Below, piece by piece: positions 6,037-18,366 of a DNA stretch of 64,000 nucleotides; within the stretch, counting starts at the first letter, position 1; each line of letters starts with the position of its first letter. A model generated the notes under the pieces. The model was not told the DNA's origin, did not search any database, and saw nothing but the letters and a program-made list of their open reading frames with translations. The DNA comes from Botryllus schlosseri (lineage: Eukaryota). The position numbers and the translations under genes were made by a program. The stretch spans positions 3,844,001 to 3,908,000 of the forward strand of contig CM119375.1 of NCBI GenBank assembly GCA_051294905.1, in the 5' to 3' direction.

Positions 6037-6459
6037 ACTCCATTATGAATATTATTCAATTGTATATCGAGGTTCTGTACCCCCAAGATGTTCTCTAAAT
6101 TATTACTTTTTTCTAGTTTCTCAATAGAATATTATTCAACATGAACGCAATAGATTTTAGAATGTAACAGACTCATTACCGGAAGACATTGTATTTTAAG
6201 CAAAGATCCATTATTTCTACGCATTATTGTATATTCAATAATTTTACTGCATGTTGCTACTAGGTGCGCTTCTTTCAGGCAATGTATAAGTATACCTGAC
6301 ATGACTTTCAAGGTTGCCATAATCAACCTGAACAAGTGGACATCCATCTATTGCCACGCGATATTATGTATTCAATAATTATAATGTACGTTCCGATACG
6401 ATGCGCTTCGCTCATGCGATGTATGACTGACATCACTCCCCACACTGTCATAAGCAAAC

Positions 6460-6804
6460 CTCGTTTCTTATCGTAGTGCTGTGACTTCCTCACAGCAACA
6501 CTGGCACTGGAAACGCAAGTTCCACTCTCATTAACAGCTTTACACTCATAGACGCCCTCGTCGTTCACTGCTGATTTCTCAATCACCAGCCTGCTCGTTA
6601 GGACTCCGTTCTCGTATTGCGTACCAACAGAAAGTCCACCCTTTTGAGCGCGTAAAGGTTTGCCGTCTCGGCTCCACAGTATTTCCGCGAATGGTCGGCA
6701 TGAAACCTCGCACCTCAGTCGCAAAGGATGACCTTCGTCAACTTCAATCGGACTTAAAGGCGATACAAACTCTGGAGCGATTACATCCGTTTTCCCAATA
6801 ATCC
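6460..6804 (-). CDS. TTN: Titin exon: Ig domain after the giant exon
   Basis: APEFVSPLSPIEVDEGHPLRLRCEVSCRPFAEILWSRDG..DEGVYECKAVN; phase 1-1; donor position less certain. Confidence 0.85.
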
Positions 6805-7146
6805 CTAATAACAAAGATGTTATGACACTAAGAATAGATTGCTCTGTTGAACCGATAGCAGGCAATATATGCCAAAGACCTTGCTACGTTTCACACCGTA
6901 TTTAACGTCCACTTACAAATTACTATAACTTCGCACAGTTCGTTACATGACAAAAATAAGGTGTCAAAGCTACCACGGTATTAATAAGAATAGATTGTAC
7001 GATATATAGGACAGAAATCAGTCAAGGCTGGGACAAGTCCGAAAGAATGATTTGTCATATCTAATGATGTAAATTTTTGAAGTACCTTCCCCGCGAATTA
7101 CTTTCATGACGCCTAGATCTTATATTTAAACACCCTTTTCACTCAC

Positions 7147-10100
7147 TTTCTTTGGGATTATCATCGATTGTATTGATTTCAGTAACAGCATCAGTGGACG
7201 ACACCTCTGTTTGTGATTGTCGTCTAATAGTCGAAGGTTGCTTATTCGTGTCGAAAGAATCGCTTTTAGATTTCTGCTGTTCAATAACGACTGCGTCGAA
7301 TTTGCGGGTGCGCGGATTCCAAGTACGTTTTGTTGTCACAGTCTTCTCTTCTACAGACATCTTTGCCTTAGCGTCCACCAGCTCATTTCTCTTGGGAACA
7401 CCCATGCGACTATCAGAAGTATCTTCCGAGACGGCTGTTTGTTCCGGTGATGTCCCATGTAATTCTGACTCCAGCTTCCTCTCAGGCGCGATTTTCGTTT
7501 GAGATAGGGATACTGTCTTTTCAGATTGCTGATCTTCTTCTACGTGCTGTCGCTGTGCTTCCACTCCTATAGTTGGTTTGCTCGTGTCACTCGTTGACAT
7601 CTTACTAAGTGAGGATTCATCCGCAATCTCGTGTTCAGACTTTCGTAAAGGACTTTTTGGTTCTGTCTTCGGTATCTGTAAACTTTGTTGTAAATGAATA
7701 TTCTGTTGCTCGTCACGCGTGGATTTAAGTTTGAGGTCTTTGTCAACATTTTCATCCCCTGTAAGTCGTGTAATTTCGGATACAGATGATTTCGTAATTG
7801 ATTCAATGGAAACGAGTTCCTTACTTGGAATCGTGACTTCTATTTCATCGCTGGGAACCTCATCCGAGCTTTCCAAAACTTCAAATTGTATATTGCCAAC
7901 CAGAGACGGCTGATCATCAGAAGCCGGTGTTCCAGCTGTTTCATCTATATCAGTGTTTGGTCTATCTTGGTCACTTGCTTCGGTACTGCTTTTGAGAGCT
8001 GACGGTACATCGACAGATTCTTTCGTTAACTTTTGACTGTGCTTCATTTTACCATCGACAGGAGTGTCTTTAGATGGTGTTTCTTGTTTCGGCTGATCAG
8101 TCTCAATAACAACTTCTTCAAAACATCTTTTTCGGGGATTCCATTTACGCTTTGTCTTCGTAGTTTTGGGCTGTATTGAATCTTCAGAAATTCGAGATGA
8201 TTGCTTTTTCGGGAATCCATCTATTTCTTCAACAATTTCAGGAGCAGGTTCCGACCTTTCAGATGCTCTAAGAATGTCATCGTCAATGTTCTCACTGTCT
8301 ACTGGTTCTATATCACGTTTGTCGGTTACAGCCGATGCTGTCAGTGATATGCCTGGCTTCTCTTGATTTTGCGAAGTCTCTGTTAATATCTCTGTGACTT
8401 TCTCATCCAATGATGTCACATCAGTTACGTGCGACGGGCTGGGTGTTTCCAAATCAGCGCTGTCTTTTACCGTAACGACATCGCGGTGTTTTGAAGCACT
8501 GCGTCGCTTATCCTTTTCCGGCATGTTCACTTCAAGTTCTTCACTTATAAATTCGTCCAGGATTTCAAACTCAACTTTACCAATCAGTGCAGGACTTGAC
8601 GTATCTTGAATCCCGCCAATATCACCTTCGGAAGTGGTGTCAGGAAGAGCAGGATGTTGAGAGGAGATGTCATCTTTGCTATCAGGAACGTCACAATCTT
8701 TTGTCATTATAGGTTCATAAGTCTTCGTTCGCATAACGTCATCAGATTCATCTCGACTCGGAGACTTCTTGGTAGGAAGTTTATCCTTCGCCTGTTTGAG
8801 GGTTTGTTTTGGCTCAACTTCATCAACTGGAATTTCATCAAAACATCGTTTCTTTGCATTCCATTTTCTCGTCGTCTTCTTGTGAACAACAGGTTTATCT
8901 TCGACTGATTTTTCCTGTAAGGATGGTTTCATTTTAACAGTGCTATCATCGTCACCAGTGGACTTGGATGTTTCTATAATAGGAACGCCCGGTGTTTCTT
9001 GAGCAAGTTCTCTTGTCCGACTAGCAACCTCGCCACGAGTACCTTTTGCCATTTCAGCTACTTCACGAGTGCCCGCATCTGCGTGCACGGGGACTTGAGG
9101 TTTTTCATTTGCAGCCTTTGTAGCAGTTATGTCGGACAGCTCTTCTTTTTGGGATGTCTCTGACAATGCTTTAGTGACTTTCTCGTCCAACATCGTCAAA
9201 GCAGTTCCGTGTGTCTCTTTCTCCGCATCGAGCCGAGTTAGATCTGTCGTTGACGACCTGGGTGTTTTCAAATCAGCGCTATCTTTCGCCGTAGCAATAT
9301 TTTGATCGCCCGAAGTGCCTGTATGCCTTCCCTTTTGCGGCATAGTTACTTCCAGTTCTGCACTCGCAAATTCATCCAAGATTTCAAACTGAACATTGCC
9401 GATGGGAGGCTGGTCTTCATCTGGACTTGAAGTATCTGAACTGTGTCTATGATCGCGTCTAAAAGCATCAGGAACAGTTGTAATTTTAGATGTGATGTCC
9501 TCATTGCTATCACGAACATCACCATCCTCTTCATGTAAAATATTGAAAGTCTTTGGTTGTGCAACTTTATCAGATTCATTTCGACTAGGAGACTTCTTGG
9601 CAAGAAATTCATCCTTTGCCTGTTTCGGTGTAGCTTTAGGCTTAGCATCATCTACCGGAATTTCTTCGAAGCGGCGCTTCTTTGCATTCCATTTTCGCAT
9701 TGTCTTCTTCTGAACAACAGGTTTGTGCTCTGGCGTTTCTTCTGTTAAGGATCGAGTCTTTTTAATACCTGAACTCGACTGGGTTTCATCAAGACTTTGA
9801 GATTCGTGTGTCACTACCACAGTATCATTATCAGTACGGGTGCTGATTTGACGGAAACCGATGTTTCTATCTGCATTGGCTAATGCAGCATCAGCATCGA
9901 ATTGTGCAGGCACGACTCCGATAGCAGGTGTGATTGGAATCTCCTCTATTGCGTTCTCAAGGCTGGATATCGGACCTTCAGTATCACCAGTTTCATTCAG
10001 GTCCTCAGACATAAGCTGCACAATATTGGATGTGGATCCAATTTCGTTTCGTGGCTTCACGATTGCTTCTCGACTAACGGTAATCGGCTCAATTGCATCT

Positions 10101-13100
10101 TCAAGCCCAACTTTCGTAGTATGTACCGGTACAGTAGGTGATATTTTCATTTTATCATCAGCTTTACCATCTGCGTCAGGTCCGCGCGACCCTTGATCCG
10201 CATCGCGCCGGGTTTTATCCGTCATCGACGACTTGGGTGGTTTCAAATCAGCTGCTGTAACAATAGTTTGGTCGCTTGAAGCATGCGAAGGTTTTCCCTT
10301 TTGCGGCATAGTTACTTCAAGTTCGTCAATCACAAATTCATCCAGGATTTCAAATTGAACATTGCCGATCGGAGCCTGTTCTTCTTTGGGAGTTGATGTA
10401 TCTGGAACATGTTTGATATTGTCTTCTAAAGCTGCGGCAGGAACAGTTATATTTTTTGATGCAATGTCATCATTGTTATCAAGAACATCAACATCTTCTT
10501 CCTGTAACGGTTTGGAAGTCTTCGGTGGCATAACTTTATCGAGTTCATTTTGACTCGGAGTCTTCTTGGTAGGAAGTTTATCCTTCGCATGTTTAGATGT
10601 TGCTTTAGGCTTAACATCATCAACCGAAATTTCTTCGAAACAGCGCTTCTTTGCGTTCCATTTTCTCACCGTCGTCTTCTTAACTACAGATTTATGCTCG
10701 GACGATTCTTCTGTCAAGGATGTAGTATGTGTAATACCTGAACTCGAATGGACTTTGTCTATCTTTTGAGATTCGGGCGTCACTACCAAAGTATCATTAT
10801 CGGTGCTAGTGGCGATTTGTCGCAAACCGACGTTTTCATCTGCATTAGCTAATGCAGTATCAGCATCGAAATGCACAGGCACATCGCCGATAGCAGGCGT
10901 GATTGGCATCTCCTCAATTGCGTTTTCAAAGCTGGAAATTGGACCTTCAGTATCACCTGTTTCTTTCAAGTCCTCAGCCATAAGCTGCACAATCTTGGAT
11001 GTGGATCCAATTTTGTTTCGTGGCTTCATGATTGCTTCTCGACTAACGGTAATCGGCTCAATTGCATCTTCAAGCCCTGCTTTTGTAGTAGGTACCGAGA
11101 CAGTGAGTGATGTATCCATTTTGTCATCAAATTTTCCATCCACATCTGGTCCGCGCGTCCCTTGATCCGCATCGAGCCGAGTTGGATCCGTCATAGACGA
11201 CATAGATGTTTTTATATCAGCACTATCTTTGACTGTAACGACATTTTGGTTGTTTGCAGCGCGGGAATACGTTTTCTTTGGCGGCATAGTTACTTCCAGT
11301 TCTTCACTCACAAATTCATCCAGAATTTCAAACTGAACATTGCCAATCAGGGGTTGTTCTTCGTCTGGACTGGAAGTATCTGAAATATGTTTAAGATTGT
11401 CTTCAACAGCTGCGTCAGTAACAGTTTGAGTTTTAGGTGCGATGTCAAGAATATCACTGTCCGCTTTCTGTAGAGGTTTGGAAGTATTTGGTTGTGTAAC
11501 TTTGTCAGGTTCATCTTGACTAGGAGACTTCTTGGTTGGAAGTCCATCCTTCGCTTGTTTCGGTGTTGATTTAGGCTTAGCATCATCAACCGGAATTTCT
11601 TCGAAACAGCGCTTCTTTGCATTCCATTTTCTAACTGTCTTCTTCTGAACAGCAGGTTTACGCCCTGCCGATTCTTCTGTGAAAGACGTAGTCATTTCAA
11701 TAACTGAACTCGAATGGGCTTCGTCAACCTTTTGAGCATCGTTATCAGTGCGAGTTGTGATTGGTCGCAAACCCACGATTTCATCTGCAGTAGCTAATGC
11801 ACTATCAGCATCGAACTGTACAGGCGAACCTCCGATAACAGGAGTGATTGGAATCTCCTCAATTGCGTTTTTAAGGCTAGATATCTTGGGTTCAGTAGCT
11901 TCAGTATCTTTGAGGTCATCAGACATAATCTCCACCATCTTGGATGTGGATCCAACTGCGTCTCGCGGCTTCACGATTGCTTGTCGGTCAACGGTAATGG
12001 GTTCAATTGCATCTTCAAGTCCCACTTTTGTAATAGGTACAGAGACAGTAGGTGATACTTCCATTCTATCTTCAGGTTTTTCTTTGACATCAATCAACGT
12101 TGTCCTCGATGCAGTAGATTTGTGTTCGTCGGAAATTTTCGATTTGGAAGTCGAAACACGCTTCGATGTTTTGGTTCTAATCGATGTTTTCATAGTAACC
12201 GGTGTGACATCCTCGCCTGGTTTCTGATCTGATTCAACTTCACTTTTCGAGTCACTGGCAGCTTTACTGCGTATTTTTGCATCTGGTGTACGTTTCATTT
12301 GACTAGATTCTGGCTCGACGGGTACTTCTTCGAACATTTTCTTCGTGGGATTCCATTTTCGTTTCATCTTTATAACTGCTTTTGAATCACATTCCTGCCG
12401 GGTCAGGAGATTATCGACCTCCGCGACTTCCTTCAGGGCATCCGCAGCTTCTGGAACAATTTCTGATTTAGTAGCGTCAGATGAGTCCGAAGTACCTGGT
12501 AGAGTGTGCTCAGAGTCTAATTCCGATTTTGCATTCACTGGCAGGGCTGCCTTATCTGCGACCTGGGGCTTCTTACTAGGCAGTTTTCTGGATAGCGTTT
12601 TGTCGCTTACCTGCACAGTTGGCGGCACAATTGTCTCGACGGGGATTTCTTCAAACATCCTCTTCGCAGGATTCCATTTTCGTTTGGTTTTATTTGCAGG
12701 AATATCATCTACTTTCGTATCAGTGAAAAGTTTCTCAATATCAATATCAGATGGTCGCGAGGACGAGGTAGATGCTTCCACAGAAGGTTCCACAACTATT
12801 CGAGCACTGTCGACTGATGTTTCCCCGATAGCTTCTTTGGATTCAACGCTTGCACTAAGACGGGCGACTAGCTCCGATGTCAGTTCGGGTTTAGGGGCTG
12901 CTTTACGTGCATCTGTATTTTCAATCATGATGGGTATCACAGGCCAATCCGTGTCGTGACCATCAGGTATAGAATCAGGGACCTTTTCCAGTTCGAGAGT
13001 CGATTTTGCGTCATGTTTCTTCGGAATATCCTGCTGCTTCTCAACGGAGCGTTTCAGGCTATCATCAACATGTGTTGCGGTTTTCTGATCCACTTCGATG

Positions 13101-16100
13101 ATCTTCGTTTCATGTTGGTCTTTTCTGCTGATCAGCGGTGCATCTTTATCACCAACAGGTTCAGTTCCTTGTTTTTCCTGAAGACCCTGCCTCGTTTTGT
13201 CTTGATTGGTGCGTACAGTTATTGAGACTTCTTCGAATTTCCGCTTCACCGGGTTCCATTTTCTTTTGGTGGCAGGTTTCGTAGAATCTTCCTTCTCTTG
13301 TTTGCGCGCATCTGCATTGGATGACGGAGCCTTTGCGGCCTCAATGTTTTCCTGTATCTTGTCGGTTGATATATCAGCAGATGGGAATTTGTCCTCATCG
13401 TTCTCGATTACTCTCGACTTTGATGATACAAGCACGATTTTCTCTTCAACTTCATCTGAGCATGCAGATCCACTCGCTGGAGATTTAATTGGTGCAGGCA
13501 GGCTCTCTGATAGTCGTTGAATCAATCTATTTTTTATTCCTGGATTTGGTTGCCTTCGCCTGGTAAGTGTGTTTCCTACGTTGACAGGAGCTATTTCCTC
13601 GTCGATATCATGTACTGATACACTGATATCTGCAGTACCCTGCCGTTCCTTCGCTGGTATATCAGGTTTTGAATCCGGATTTAGCATCTTTTCAGATTCT
13701 ACAGTTTTGGACTGCATGATAGTCGACTCCTGTTTATCTTCCTGTATATTTTGCATGCCATCCACAGCAGATTTCGGCAAGGCAGTGCATGCAAAAGACG
13801 CATCCTTACTTTGTGTGCTTTCCTCTGTAACGCTCTCGATTGTTTTATCTTCTCTCGTTACCTGAGGTTTCTTATCGTCCTTTGATAATTTGGATCGAGG
13901 CTTTGGAGATGGTTTGTTATTAGAAGATTGGGTATCTTCAAGAACAATATCTTCAAAGCACTTTTTCGAAGGATTCCACCTCCTCTTCGTCTTTGATTTC
14001 GAATCCTTCGTCATAACATCCCCATCTCTTTTGGTTCTCTTAACCTCCTGGGATGCATTTTCGAACGAGATTTCAGTCGAAGATGCCAAAACAGTTGTTT
14101 GAGCAAGTTTGGCTGTAGCATCCTCCGATTTCAAGTAGATTTCCTTGTTAATCTGGTGCATTTTGCCAAGATCAGTTGGCACTGCCGCATCAGATTGGTG
14201 GGAAGGTGATTGCGCTGTTGGTGATTTGTCATCAATCCTTGACTGTTGGTAATCTGACCGGGAAGTCTGTGTTGACGAGGTTTCAGTATCATCCTTAGTT
14301 TGCACAAGCGACGTGGGTACCAGTTTTCTTTCGACCCCTGTTGGAGTGGTCTGCGTTTGTCCGACATCTGTCTGTAGTGTGAGCGAACCAATATTTACGG
14401 TATCGGTTTGAGTATATGTAGTGTCCCTTTTATTGTCAGCTTGGGATTGTGCAGGCTGTGCGGATGATTCAGTTTGAACACGTACCGAGTTATCTCCAGT
14501 AGACGGGGTCGCGGTTTGCGAATGTGTGGCGCCTGTTACAATTCTTGATTTCGTTTGCGCAGAGGTAGTCGTACGGGGTATAGATTCGGTTTGAGTTGTA
14601 AAAGATTCCCGACTTTGGAAGGTCTGAACTTGGGTATGCCGTGCAGGTTTCGCAGGTTCGTACGTCTGCGTTTCCCTGACAGCAAGGTCCAAATCATCGG
14701 ACTGTATCATTGTTGAATTCATCGCCACGGGTTCAGTTTGCACATTGAAATCGCTTCCGCTCTGTTCTGTTTGATTGGACGCAGATGAAGATGCAATTTT
14801 CTGAGTATCGGTTTGAGTGCTTTCTGTCGAGATTTCGTGCCTCGTTTGGGTGTCACTAGAGATCGATATATGCTTTTGAATGACATTCGAATCGCTGCTG
14901 CCGCGATCTTGCTTGGTTTCAGACGTCGGACGTGCACCATCGTACTCCAAATCATATGTTGTAGTATCTGGTCCGTACAGTAGCGATCTTCTATAAGTCG
15001 GCTGCGAAATGCCCGATAAAAAATCATCTGCTGATTCGTAAGAGACAGTAAGATCTTCTGGTACTGCAGTCTTGAGTTCAGCATGCCTATCTTTTCGAAG
15101 CTGAAATTGTAACACGACCGGCTCCGTAGCTACCGACTTACGATGCATTGCTAATTCGGTGACCGTTGGAGGAAAGACATCTGCATCTTCTACACTTGCG
15201 TCTTCCACGTCTTTAATTGGAGGTGGGCGATTAATTCCTGGTCGACTATCAAATACCAGAGAATACTTGCTGGTATCAGCTCCATAGAGAAGCGACCGTT
15301 TACGTTCTGTTTTCCTCATCGGCAAATCATTGAATTCATGAGCATACTCGATGGTTGTTTCAGATTCTTGTATTTCTTGAGCCCCCGTGACAACATCGGA
15401 ATGCCGATCGGTTCTGGTCGCAAACTTTTGCACCTTTGTATCATAAGCGATTGATTTTCGTGGTTTTGCGACAGCCCTGGGGATCTCCTCAAGTTCATGT
15501 ACTGTCTCTAGATCTGAATCAACTTTCGTTAGAGTTGCTTCCTTCATGTTGAGCGTCTGAATTGCGATCGTTTGACTAGCTCGCCAGGTTTGCGAATCTG
15601 CATCGGTGACATTGTCAGTTTGAGTTTCAAAGGTTTTCGTACGCAATACACTCGTCTGTTGCGACTGTACCAGGCTAATTTTTCTGGGCTCCGTTGTACT
15701 TGTGGAACGTCTTTGTGACGTCTGAACGGAAAAGATGTCTACGGATTTCTGATCGCGATCGATATGAGTTTGAGTCGAAACGTATCTGGTATCTGCTGGA
15801 ATTGTTTGAGTAACAGCAAATGATTCCAATTCTCCAGTCTGCGTTTCCATTTCTGATTCAGGCACATTTTCCCTTGCAGTGTTTACAGACACCGTGCTAC
15901 CGTAGCTGTCTGTTTGTGTGTCGACGCCTTTTTGTACAACTGAATCTGAGATTGTAAAAGAAGATTTCTTCTTAGCCAATGTCGTTTGAGTTATTCTGCT
16001 AAAATTCCTCTCTTGTGACGTTGTTTGGGTTTGCGCAAAGCTCCCAATAACAGTCTGCGTACTAGAACCATTATCAGCCCGGCTTGGTTTGCGAGTCTGT

Positions 16101-17712
16101 GTGCTTGTAACAGACTTGTTCATGGATTCAGTTTGAGTATCACCATGATATGTATCAGGTCCCTTAGTTTCCGTGCTGGCATCTGAGAGGATACGTGAAT
16201 CATGTGTGTCAGCACCATAAACATTCGTTATTGATCGCCTTGCTAACAGAGATTGGGTGTCAGCGCGACGAGACGGCCTTTCAGCCAGTGTCGTGATGTC
16301 TTTCAGTTCGCCTGTTACTAAATCAAGTGTCTGCGTGCCAGACACCGCCTTGCTATCTTTGGTTTGAGTATATCCGACTAGTGTTAACTTTTTGATAGTT
16401 TGAGACGAAGCCATGCTTTTCTGCATCTCAGTTTGTCCGAGAAAATCCGAACTGACCGGTGCTCCGGTTTGAGTGCTATAAGATGGAGTAGACGCTCCAA
16501 CTGATTTATCTTGTCGCATTTCCGTTTGTGTCTCTGTTGCCAGCTGCGTGTCTATGGTCTGTGTAGGACCAGTGACACGAACAGGAACACGTTGGGAACG
16601 GGTCTGCGTTGATACAACCCTATCCGAAGATTCGGTCTGAGATGCCCCGGAAACTTTACGGGCATGCCTTGTCTGTATTTCGGTACTTGATGTAAATTTG
16701 CGAGTCTGAGATTCAGTATCAGATTTGTCAGAAACTACCGCTCCAGGAGCCCGTGTACTACCTTCCGAAGTAGTGCGACTAACTGTCTCATTAGTACGGA
16801 CTGTCTTCATTGGATTTAGATTCTTAGGCGTGCTGAGAGTAATTGTACGCTCAGAGAAGGTCTGCTGCTTGCCGGGAAGTTGCAGATAAGCCTCGCTTCT
16901 TTTCTTTTCGTCCATCAGATTATCTTCTGAAATCTCTCCAAGGTCTATATCTTCCGTACGGTGCGATTCCGCTTCAGATATATAATGTGGCTTCCCGTCA
17001 ACTGATTCCCCTTCGGACATATAAGAGGACTTTTCCGCGACTGTCTCCAATTCACCCTGTCCGGCCAGTTTCACTACTACTTCTGGGTACTTTCTTTTGT
17101 TTTTCACGTCCATGGTATACATCGAAATTCCTGATCTTTTGGATTCGGGTTTCTCCTTCCGTCGGTAAAGTTCTATAAATTTTCTTTTCGGTTGCGTCGA
17201 AATACCTTCCACAAAGAGTGGCGATGCCACGCCGTCCTCTCTGTCACTCAGGTCACTTCCAAAGTCAAAACAAGAGTCCGTATCTGATGTCAGTGCAGGA
17301 GATATCAATTGATAGTCATCAGTTTCTGAGAAAGATACCTTTTTGCGAAGTCGCAATTCTGTAGATACCGATCTCTGTGTAGTTCTTGAAAATGGAGATA
17401 TTGGTGCCTTCTCACTTATGCTACGGATTTGTCGTTTCGGACTACTCTTTCTTTTGGGCATTATAAAGCGCATGTTAATACCGCTTTTGCCCGGGGAAGG
17501 TGGCCGCATGACCAATTCCTTACTCTTTTGCGACATTTGAATCGGAGTTACAGTTCGCGCTGGGCTGGTCGCTGGAGATTTAGACCTGACTAGTCTAGTA
17601 GTTACGTGGCTTAGATGTCGTCTTTCTTGCACGGATACTTCGCGTGAGTGCTGCGCCTCGATCGCGTCGTGCTTCGCCTGGCGTGGATCTACCTGATACG
17701 AAGGATCTTGGC
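7147..17712 (-). CDS. TTN: Giant 10,566-nt titin exon: about 3,520 aa disordered S/T/D/E/K-rich segment
   Basis: ORF 7139..17632 extends to acceptor ccgcag| at 17712 and ends at donor A|GTGAGT at 7147; length divisible by 3; phase 1-1; no Ig or Fn3 signature. Confidence 0.9.
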
Positions 17713-18366
17713 CTGCGGTGGTTGTGGTAAGTGGAAGGCGAATAAGGGAGATGAGAGGTGAAGCAAGGGTATGAAATGAAGTGAAAGTTGTGATGAAAGA
17801 GAAAATAAAGATAGTTAGAATTGAAAAGTAAAAATTAAAGATATTACGAGAGTGAGAAAGTTGGGAATACCTATAACGTTAAAACCCATACCCATGTCTA
17901 CCCATACTCAAAGTATGGCAAGAATCGATATGAAGTTACGTAGGAATCGTTGGGTGACGTTTTTACAATGCTGCAAATCACTCAAGTGTTCTTCTGGCGA
18001 TATCACTGTCAAGAATCGTTAATGTGAGCTAAATAAATATACGTACTCTCCAGATATTTTATGTATTCAACAGTGTCGCAGCTAAATGGCATTGGATAAA
18101 TCCAGCACTGTGGCCGCTGCTACTGTAAATACTATGGTATACGATGAAAGAAATGATCGATCACCAAAGAATAGAAACTTTTCAGGACTACAGTTGAATC
18201 ATGGAACACTGTACTGTCGAAATATATAATATATAATATGTGGATACTAGGCAGGTAAGGTAGACGTGAGCAGCGTCAAGAAGATTGTGTTGATCATAAA
18301 TATATAAACACATGATTGTGTGGATTATGATATATGATGGAATGATGTAAAGAAATCAATTTTCAC

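Follow-up and report, generated by a model that had tools for sequence, protein, structure and literature searches.

The disordered springs of titin are usually treated as featureless entropic chains with few ligand sites. Short, lineage-specific repeats that are neither immunoglobulin (Ig) nor Fn3 domains have been described for spring and anchor regions of the titin family, including the PEVK PPAK repeats, the Z-repeats, the kettin linkers and the PEVT repeats of C. elegans TTN-1, and some of these dock ligands. Of another kind are small β-hairpins such as the C-terminal hairpin of GB1 (residues 41-56) and the designed peptide chignolin, with the published core sequences Y-D-D-A-T-K-T-F (GB1 45-52) and Y-D-P-E-T-G-T-W (chignolin 2-9). 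Here, we describe a 21-residue module present ten times in a giant exon of a titin-like gene of the sea squirt Botryllus schlosseri, found within 64,000 nucleotides of DNA (GenBank assembly GCA_051294905.1, contig CM119375.1, positions 3,844,001 to 3,908,000), hereafter the window. A sharply conserved module with a predicted structure thus lies in a disordered spring over 3,500 residues long, and it has persisted in sea-squirt lineages between which the Ig domains have diverged to about 25% identity. The module appears to belong to a known class, that of short repeats conserved in the springs of giant muscle proteins; what would be unusual about it is the predicted stand-alone hairpin fold. 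It is short, lineage-specific and non-Ig/non-Fn3 like the titin-family repeats listed above, but its sequence is a different one, its copies are dispersed in long linkers rather than contiguous, and a β-hairpin is predicted rather than a polyproline II or helical conformation.

Ten copies of a conserved module and their predicted fold

A preliminary description, made from the DNA letters, had reported ten copies of a short tryptophan-containing motif. When expressed as [KR].WN[PA]..[KR].F[ED], this motif matches the translation of the giant exon exactly ten times, the positions given earlier all lie within about 20 nt of the coordinates found here (Table 1), and the peptides quoted were correct. 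The motif was also said to hold most of the Trp residues of the exon, and 10 of the 12 do lie within it. From the composition of the giant exon itself, about 2e-6 motif matches would be expected by chance. A strict degenerate DNA pattern matched the 495.5-Mb genome nine times, always in the giant exon, and its reversed control gave no match; the copy missed by this pattern has Thr where Lys/Arg is demanded. The family profile (77 instances) recovered all ten copies at 36-51 bits and produced no other significant match in the genome. As both the strict pattern and the family profile match only the giant-exon copies, the module is private to this exon within the genome.

The motif had further been described as conserved even where the flanks share no similarity. 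This holds for about six independent islands, whereas copies 5-8 are recent tandem duplicates, situated in repeats of ~322 residues (flank z-scores 27-59), with an only weakly similar upstream flank in the case of copy 8 (z about 4). In the same flank comparison copy 9 appeared as a weaker relative of the tandem repeats, copies 2 and 3 shared a trace of similarity upstream, and no flank similarity was detectable for copies 1, 4 and 10. Among copies 1, 2, 3, 4, 9 and 10 the 21-residue module is 56% identical, compared with 6-8% for the flanks. Since codons differ synonymously within the motif (AGG/AGA/CGA/CGT, AAT/AAC, CCT/CCG/CCC and TTT/TTC), it is the protein sequence that is kept.

The family consensus, obtained from 79 instances, reads v-K-K-T-K-[RQ]-v-W-N-P-K-[TS]-R-K-F-[DE]-E-[VI]-V-[VI]-E. 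Trp, taken as position 0, and Asn are invariant (79/79), and high conservation is also seen for Phe (75/79), Pro (67/79), Lys at -3 (66/79), V/I/L at +10 (65/79), and Arg at +5 and Glu at +9 (63/79 each). Individual modules have a net charge of +1.4 to +4. In the hairpin discussed below, the net charge is +3.2 for strand 1 and -2.6 for strand 2. Modules 1, 5, 6, 8 and 9 carry a Cys at +6, just before the conserved Phe, which accounts for five of the ten Cys residues of the exon; other species have Lys at this position. This Cys could be a lineage-specific redox or cross-linking site.

A hairpin had been suggested for the motif, and structure prediction of the chain alone agrees with this suggestion, AlphaFold2 giving a two-stranded hairpin in two separate settings. 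In the otherwise disordered 323-residue unit of copy 6 (five-row alignment; whole-chain mean predicted local distance difference test (pLDDT) score of 46), the predicted strands 164-169 (TVRKWN) and 174-179 (CFEEIS) form a hairpin with a block-mean pLDDT of 87-92. Copy 3, modelled with 77 family rows, adopts a matching register (block-mean pLDDT 81, seven residues at 90 or above). The predicted strands extend from -4 to +1 and from +6 to +11 and are connected by a four-residue loop, so that Trp(0) lies opposite Phe(+7), R/Q(-2) faces E(+9) and K(-6) faces E(+13). Within the family, these predicted cross-strand pairs are present as W/F in 75 of 79 instances, as R or Q with E in 57 and as K with E in 41. 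On the basis of these models, the module probably folds as a β-hairpin of the GB1/chignolin type. Two copies of a 44-residue module modelled as a complex scored 0.03 against a mark of 0.32, a result that counts neither for nor against self-pairing.

The likeness to chignolin and GB1 noted in the preliminary description is borne out by the predicted register and by the family core, both of which agree with the GB1 45-52 and chignolin hairpins. What they share is a pair of aromatic residues (i and i+7) that enclose D/N at i+1, P/D at i+2, T at i+4 and K/G at i+5. The pattern [WYF][DN][PD]xT[GKR]x[WYF] fits 40 of the 79 family cores and a relaxed version fits 64, and the family core W-N-P-K-T-R-K-F is nearer to the GB1 and chignolin cores than are the copies of the window. 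The similarity is one of structural class and not of common descent. Unlike the GB1 and chignolin hairpins, the module is natural, is repeated 5-22 times in a disordered animal muscle protein and has longer, charge-complementary strands in place of a four-residue hydrophobic cluster.

Relatives in other species and comparison with described families

A hidden Markov model (HMM) built from the ten copies, a check proposed in the preliminary description, was scored against 1.84 billion representative proteins and gave 15 matches. Seven of these are real relatives, with 5-22 copies each: P0001 (22 copies), P0002 (13), P0003 (9), P0004 (8), P0005 (5), P0007 (5) and P0012 (7). At least six species besides B. 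schlosseri have thus kept the motif. The remaining matches are WD40 proteins, which share the wording T-V-R-[LI]-W-N-x-x-T, and two spurious ones; P0006 (a Bradyrhizobium hypothetical protein) and P0013, which are without any Trp, were discarded as relatives. No multi-copy match came from any other named animal, in a library for which the presence of full-length vertebrate or amphioxus titins is not established. Among the window copies, module 10 with its core WNPRTRKFD is nearest to the family consensus, and this wording recurs in P0001, P0002, P0004 and the Ciona protein. The latter, P0005, is Ciona intestinalis XP_026691853.1, automatically named 'proteoglycan 4-like'. Its six TQT motifs and five hairpin modules follow one another as they do in the titin-like exons, and its name is probably a low-complexity artefact; the annotation can be corrected to a TQT-plus-module architecture.

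Five of the relatives are encoded on long eukaryotic contigs filed as metagenome assemblies, and each of them has the giant open reading frame (ORF) flanked on both sides by I-set Ig ORFs of the same strand. In four of the five loci an Ig-containing ORF of 345-372 residues follows, which aligns end to end with the window ORF 1871-2893 at 25-29% identity, and in P0001, P0002 and P0007 the giant ORF continues directly into the next Ig domain (Pfam). Given this common Ig-flanked layout and the alignment of the downstream ORF, the ORFs of the relatives and the exon of the window are orthologous exons, although the species have diverged deeply. Identity between the window and the other species is 45% for the module, 8% for the flanks and about 25% for the neighbouring Ig domain. 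The modules are spaced irregularly, by 46-765 residues, and the spacing differs between species, so no ruler is implied. A TQT array is found upstream of the module array in seven of eight proteins, the exception being P0007, a fragment on a 5.6-kb contig; the order of TQT array, then modules, is the same in P0001-P0005 and P0012, including the Ciona protein. The orthologous loci L016-L020 lack the 342-nt intron that follows the giant exon in B. schlosseri (6805-7146) and have a single uninterrupted ORF instead; hence this intron was gained or lost within the group. In three of these loci, retroelement ORFs (RVT_1, Exo_endo_phos_2, GIY-YIG) are located in introns upstream of the giant exon (L017 21-2438, L019 6451-7227 and L020 168-1936).

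A word-indexed protein search with residues 1700-3497 of the exon returned no relatives, and the same search with the downstream 340-residue Ig ORF gave two matches only. The failure of the former is attributed to the length window and to low-complexity words, because the exhaustive HMM search found relatives in that length range.

Neither Pfam, PDB sequences nor the searchable literature contains a described repeat family that matches the module. The giant exon has no Pfam domain (E up to 1), and neither the exon nor the 77-row module profile has a match among PDB sequences, even at E up to 10. Motif wordings retrieved nothing relevant from the searchable literature, and the titin-evolution papers there hold no description of this region. 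The remark in the preliminary description that the motif is not recognised from known titins stands insofar as there is no described match, but the host itself is titin-like, so the remark amounts to a lineage-specific insert.

Several described families come close in wording. The strand C-turn-strand D hairpin of WD40 repeats has the wording T-V-R-[LI]-W-[ND]-x-x-T in common with the module, a likeness confined to the first strand and turn (about 10-13 profile positions). The module was rejected as a WD40 repeat (PF00400), as it lacks the GH dipeptide, the four-stranded blade and contiguous repeats and there is no Pfam match in the exon. A titin PEVK PPAK repeat (PF02818) was likewise rejected, with no Pfam match in the exon, P0001, P0002, P0005 or P0007. 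LC8-type TQT arrays resemble the module array in having many short conserved elements at irregular spacing on a disordered chain. However, the module is longer, holds far more information (36-51 bits per copy) and lacks a TQT anchor; it contains no TQT, and the TQT array occupies a part of the exon of its own, upstream of the modules, so the module is not an LC8-binding TQT motif. Minor-groove importin-alpha nuclear localization signals reportedly include the K-R-x-[WFY] classes defined by Kosugi et al. in 2009. The module does not qualify as such a signal, since K-R-K-W is present in only four of the ten window copies, the family has K-[RQ]-V-W and no A-F follows. A SUMO-interacting motif was discarded because V-V-V-E or I-I-I-E is found in other species but most window copies have I-P-V or I-S-V. 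A WH2/thymosin LKKT element was rejected too: v-K-K-T-K is present, but positions upstream of -8 hold about 0.3 bits, with no conserved helix. As a PP1-RVxF motif, the module fails on family-wide conservation.

Docking, mechanical and other readings of the array

We hypothesize that the modules are small structured sites, possibly force-labile, which together make a disordered spring into a multivalent docking array, and consider the chances of this explanation as a whole to be about even. The module would comprise a basic strand (v-K-K-T-K-R/Q-v-W), a capping Asn with a four-residue turn (N-P-K-T-R) and an acidic/aliphatic strand (K-F-D/E-E-V/I-V-V/I-E). Alone or upon binding, it would fold into a two-stranded β-hairpin in which Trp(0) packs on Phe(+7) and the Arg/Lys residues of strand 1 pair with Glu/Asp of strand 2. 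The 5-22 copies, scattered through a disordered, slightly acidic chain downstream of the TQT array in one giant exon of a sea-squirt titin-like gene, would act as small folded epitopes along a flexible spring and would most likely serve as a multivalent docking array for one partner. So small a hairpin should unzip at a few piconewtons, and stretching could therefore abolish binding. Docking is favoured because the conservation is stricter than foldability alone usually requires, because ten hairpins would hide only about 5% of the contour length, and because the exon also bears a motif array of the docking kind (TQT).

Several points weigh against this hypothesis and the underlying fold. The strict GB1/chignolin pattern fits just one of the ten window copies, most of which have Lys and not Thr at +4, and four have Ala and not Pro at +2. 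WD40 repeats are the only cross-matches of the HMM, so part of the wording is a common strand-turn pattern, and the confidence that AlphaFold2 assigns to a hairpin of 16 residues may stem in part from WD40 or GB1 patterns that it has learned. The irregular spacing speaks against the modules matching a filament in the manner of a ruler. Conservation extends to both faces of the hairpin, which folding needs alone could explain. The module is in no other gene of the genome, so no shared recognition system is visible, and four of the ten copies, being recent duplicates, are not independent.

If the peptides fold, the module would be, to our knowledge, the first natural family of stand-alone GB1/chignolin-type hairpins. 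It would provide peptide-folding research with an evolved set of 79 sequence variants, and muscle biology with a candidate docking array that is multivalent and possibly sensitive to force, in the invertebrates most closely related to vertebrates.

As an alternative, which we regard as unlikely, the hairpins could have a role that is only mechanical or physical. The modules would then be marginally stable micro-folds without a partner, which might tune the compaction or stiffness of the spring, for example as basic 'stickers' against acidic linkers, or act as small sacrificial structures. The opposite charges of modules (+1.4 to +4 each) and linkers (+0.8 to -6.2 per 100 residues) fit this role, as do the predicted hairpin and the free variation of copy number and spacing, and the needs of folding can account for the conserved W, N, P, T, R/K and F and for the charge pairs. 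On the other hand, ten hairpins would hide an estimated ~60-70 nm of a contour length of ~1.3 um, a small gain, and Trp and Asn that are invariant in 79 of 79 instances, across lineages with ~25% identical Ig domains, are kept more strictly than foldability usually needs.

The docking hypothesis can be extended to autonomously folding mini β-hairpins that serve as force-gated docking sites, a natural counterpart of chignolin, though we are doubtful of this stronger form. At low tension the folded hairpin would offer a Trp/Phe/Arg/Glu face to its partner, whereas a few piconewtons would unzip it, free the partner and expose a T-x-R site or F-x-x-V core. The titin spring would in this way report stretch through 5-22 identical switches.

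It has also to be considered that the module is not a hairpin but an extended-strand linear motif, which binds by strand addition to a partner, for instance ATG8-family proteins via a sequence F-[DE]-E-[VI] resembling an LC3-interacting region (LIR). Phe at +7 (75/79) and V/I/L at +10 (65/79) fit [WFY]xx[LIV], and the segments of disordered regions in which AlphaFold2 is confident are often ones that become folded when bound. LIR cores are usually preceded by acidic residues, whereas the residues before Phe are basic here (T-R-K). Moreover, an LIR offers no role for the invariant W-N-P located seven residues upstream, and both AlphaFold2 models set Phe against Trp, which makes the LIR-like motif improbable.

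Quite improbable, in our view, is a role as a basic patch, either for nuclear import or for binding of membranes, nucleic acids or actin, with K-R-K-W or v-K-K-T-K as an NLS-like or LKKT-like element. While four window copies carry K-R-K-W and the upstream family consensus is v-K-K-T-K, the family does not retain the former and usually has K-[RQ]-V-W. In addition, the lack of conservation upstream of -8 (about 0.3 bits) leaves no WH2-type helix, and the conserved acidic strand would go unexplained. Finally, the idea that the copies are functionless leftovers of recent internal duplication, which copies 5-8 as recent tandem duplicates might suggest, is scarcely credible given that the remaining copies have retained the module between flanks of no more than background identity, that synonymous changes occur within the motif and that at least six further species conserve the module.

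Host exon, expression and further features

The giant exon contains a 3497-residue open frame (window 7139-17632, minus strand; the exon translation is that of 17712-7147). Its acceptor consists of a polypyrimidine tract followed by ...ccgcag|G at 17713/17712, and its donor is AAA|GTGAGT at 7147/7146, the latter corroborated by spliced contigs. The product is a disordered polyampholyte, with the TQT array in the N-terminal half and the hairpin-module array in the C-terminal two thirds. Linkers between the modules are neutral to acidic, and about one third of their residues are charged. I-set matches (Pfam) were obtained for eight of nine minus-strand ORFs tested, on both sides of the giant exon. 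This chain of I-set Ig exons, flanking the insert on the same strand, points to a titin/connectin-like host gene, whose kinase and A-band parts would lie outside the window. Elsewhere in the genome, two matches to the GH6 cellulase domain are consistent with a tunicate cellulose synthase.

The joint 6803|7146 (cut +1), with GT..AG ends on the minus strand, is present in contigs of three runs from three studies. One contig, 3,263 nt long, extends over the Ig exon and the adjoining 2.9 kb of the giant exon, in which copies 8-10 are included. The read depth of run X6 is continuous over 7147-12249 and falls from about 122 to about 5 in the intron. The giant exon is thus expressed, as shown by the spliced contigs. 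A raw bulk RNA run (X23) has almost no reads on the exon, but its tissue and strain are unspecified, so this is no sign of silence. The indels seen in the exon (3, 3, 3, 6 and 18 nt and a +1/-1 pair) keep the frame throughout. The +1 insertion and the 1-nt deletion of the pair are 6 nt apart (7529 and 7535) and occur in one run, X6. At window position 7293, module 10 reads FDAV in the reference and FDEV in RNA-derived contigs of all three studies; the change, G>T on the plus strand, restores the family-consensus Glu at +9.

Table 1. Coordinates of the hairpin modules and associated features in the window.
Feature	Coordinates	Strand	Remarks
Hairpin module 1	13937..13999 (core 13952-13984)	-	positions -7..+13 around Trp, ORF residue 1219
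Hairpin module 2	13217..13279 (core 13232-13264)	-	Trp residue 1459
Hairpin module 3	12635..12697 (core 12650-12682)	-	Trp residue 1653; folded with 77-row family alignment
Hairpin module 4	12314..12376 (core 12329-12361)	-	Trp residue 1760
Hairpin module 5	11585..11647 (core 11600-11632)	-	Trp residue 2003; tandem repeat unit 11159-12127
Hairpin module 6	10619..10681 (core 10634-10666)	-	Trp residue 2325; tandem repeat unit 10193-11161; folded within 323-residue unit
Hairpin module 7	9650..9712 (core 9665-9697)	-	Trp residue 2648; tandem repeat unit 9224-10192
Hairpin module 8	8822..8884 (core 8837-8869)	-	Trp residue 2924; partial repeat unit
Hairpin module 9	8102..8164 (core 8117-8149)	-	Trp residue 3164
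Hairpin module 10	7280..7342 (core 7295-7327)	-	Trp residue 3438; last copy before Ig domain
Three ~322-residue tandem repeat units	9224..12127	-	66-71% identical; each with one hairpin module and one second-motif copy
Giant exon	7147..17712	-	10,566 nt = 3,522 codons, phase 1-1; open frame and splice sites
Intron	6805..7146	-	342 nt, GT..AG; spliced out in RNA-derived contigs from three studies
Next exon, I-set Ig domain	6459..6804	-	spliced in frame to giant exon

A second motif, IGNVQFEILDEFxSxELEVTMP, follows modules 5-9 at a distance of ~100 residues (11264-11353, 10286-10375, 9320-9409, 8501-8590 and 7817-7906, minus strand). A local hmmsearch with this motif (IGNVQFEILDEF..ELEVTMP) did not find it in the other species, so it is lineage-specific. 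AlphaFold2 predicts no secondary structure for it (pLDDT 51-57) and no packing between it and the hairpin.

The TQT/QT array that precedes the modules occupies 14260-16720 on the minus strand, and the giant exon of the window contains 24 TQT in all. When the modules are masked, an alignment of the exon with another species is left only for an N-terminal stretch (~17250-17620, minus strand; ORF residues 5-127), which matches P0002 (E 2.6e-4). This stretch includes the sequence RKKVSFSE, with the counterpart KKKTVSFS in P0002, and resembles the PP1-docking RVxF motif.

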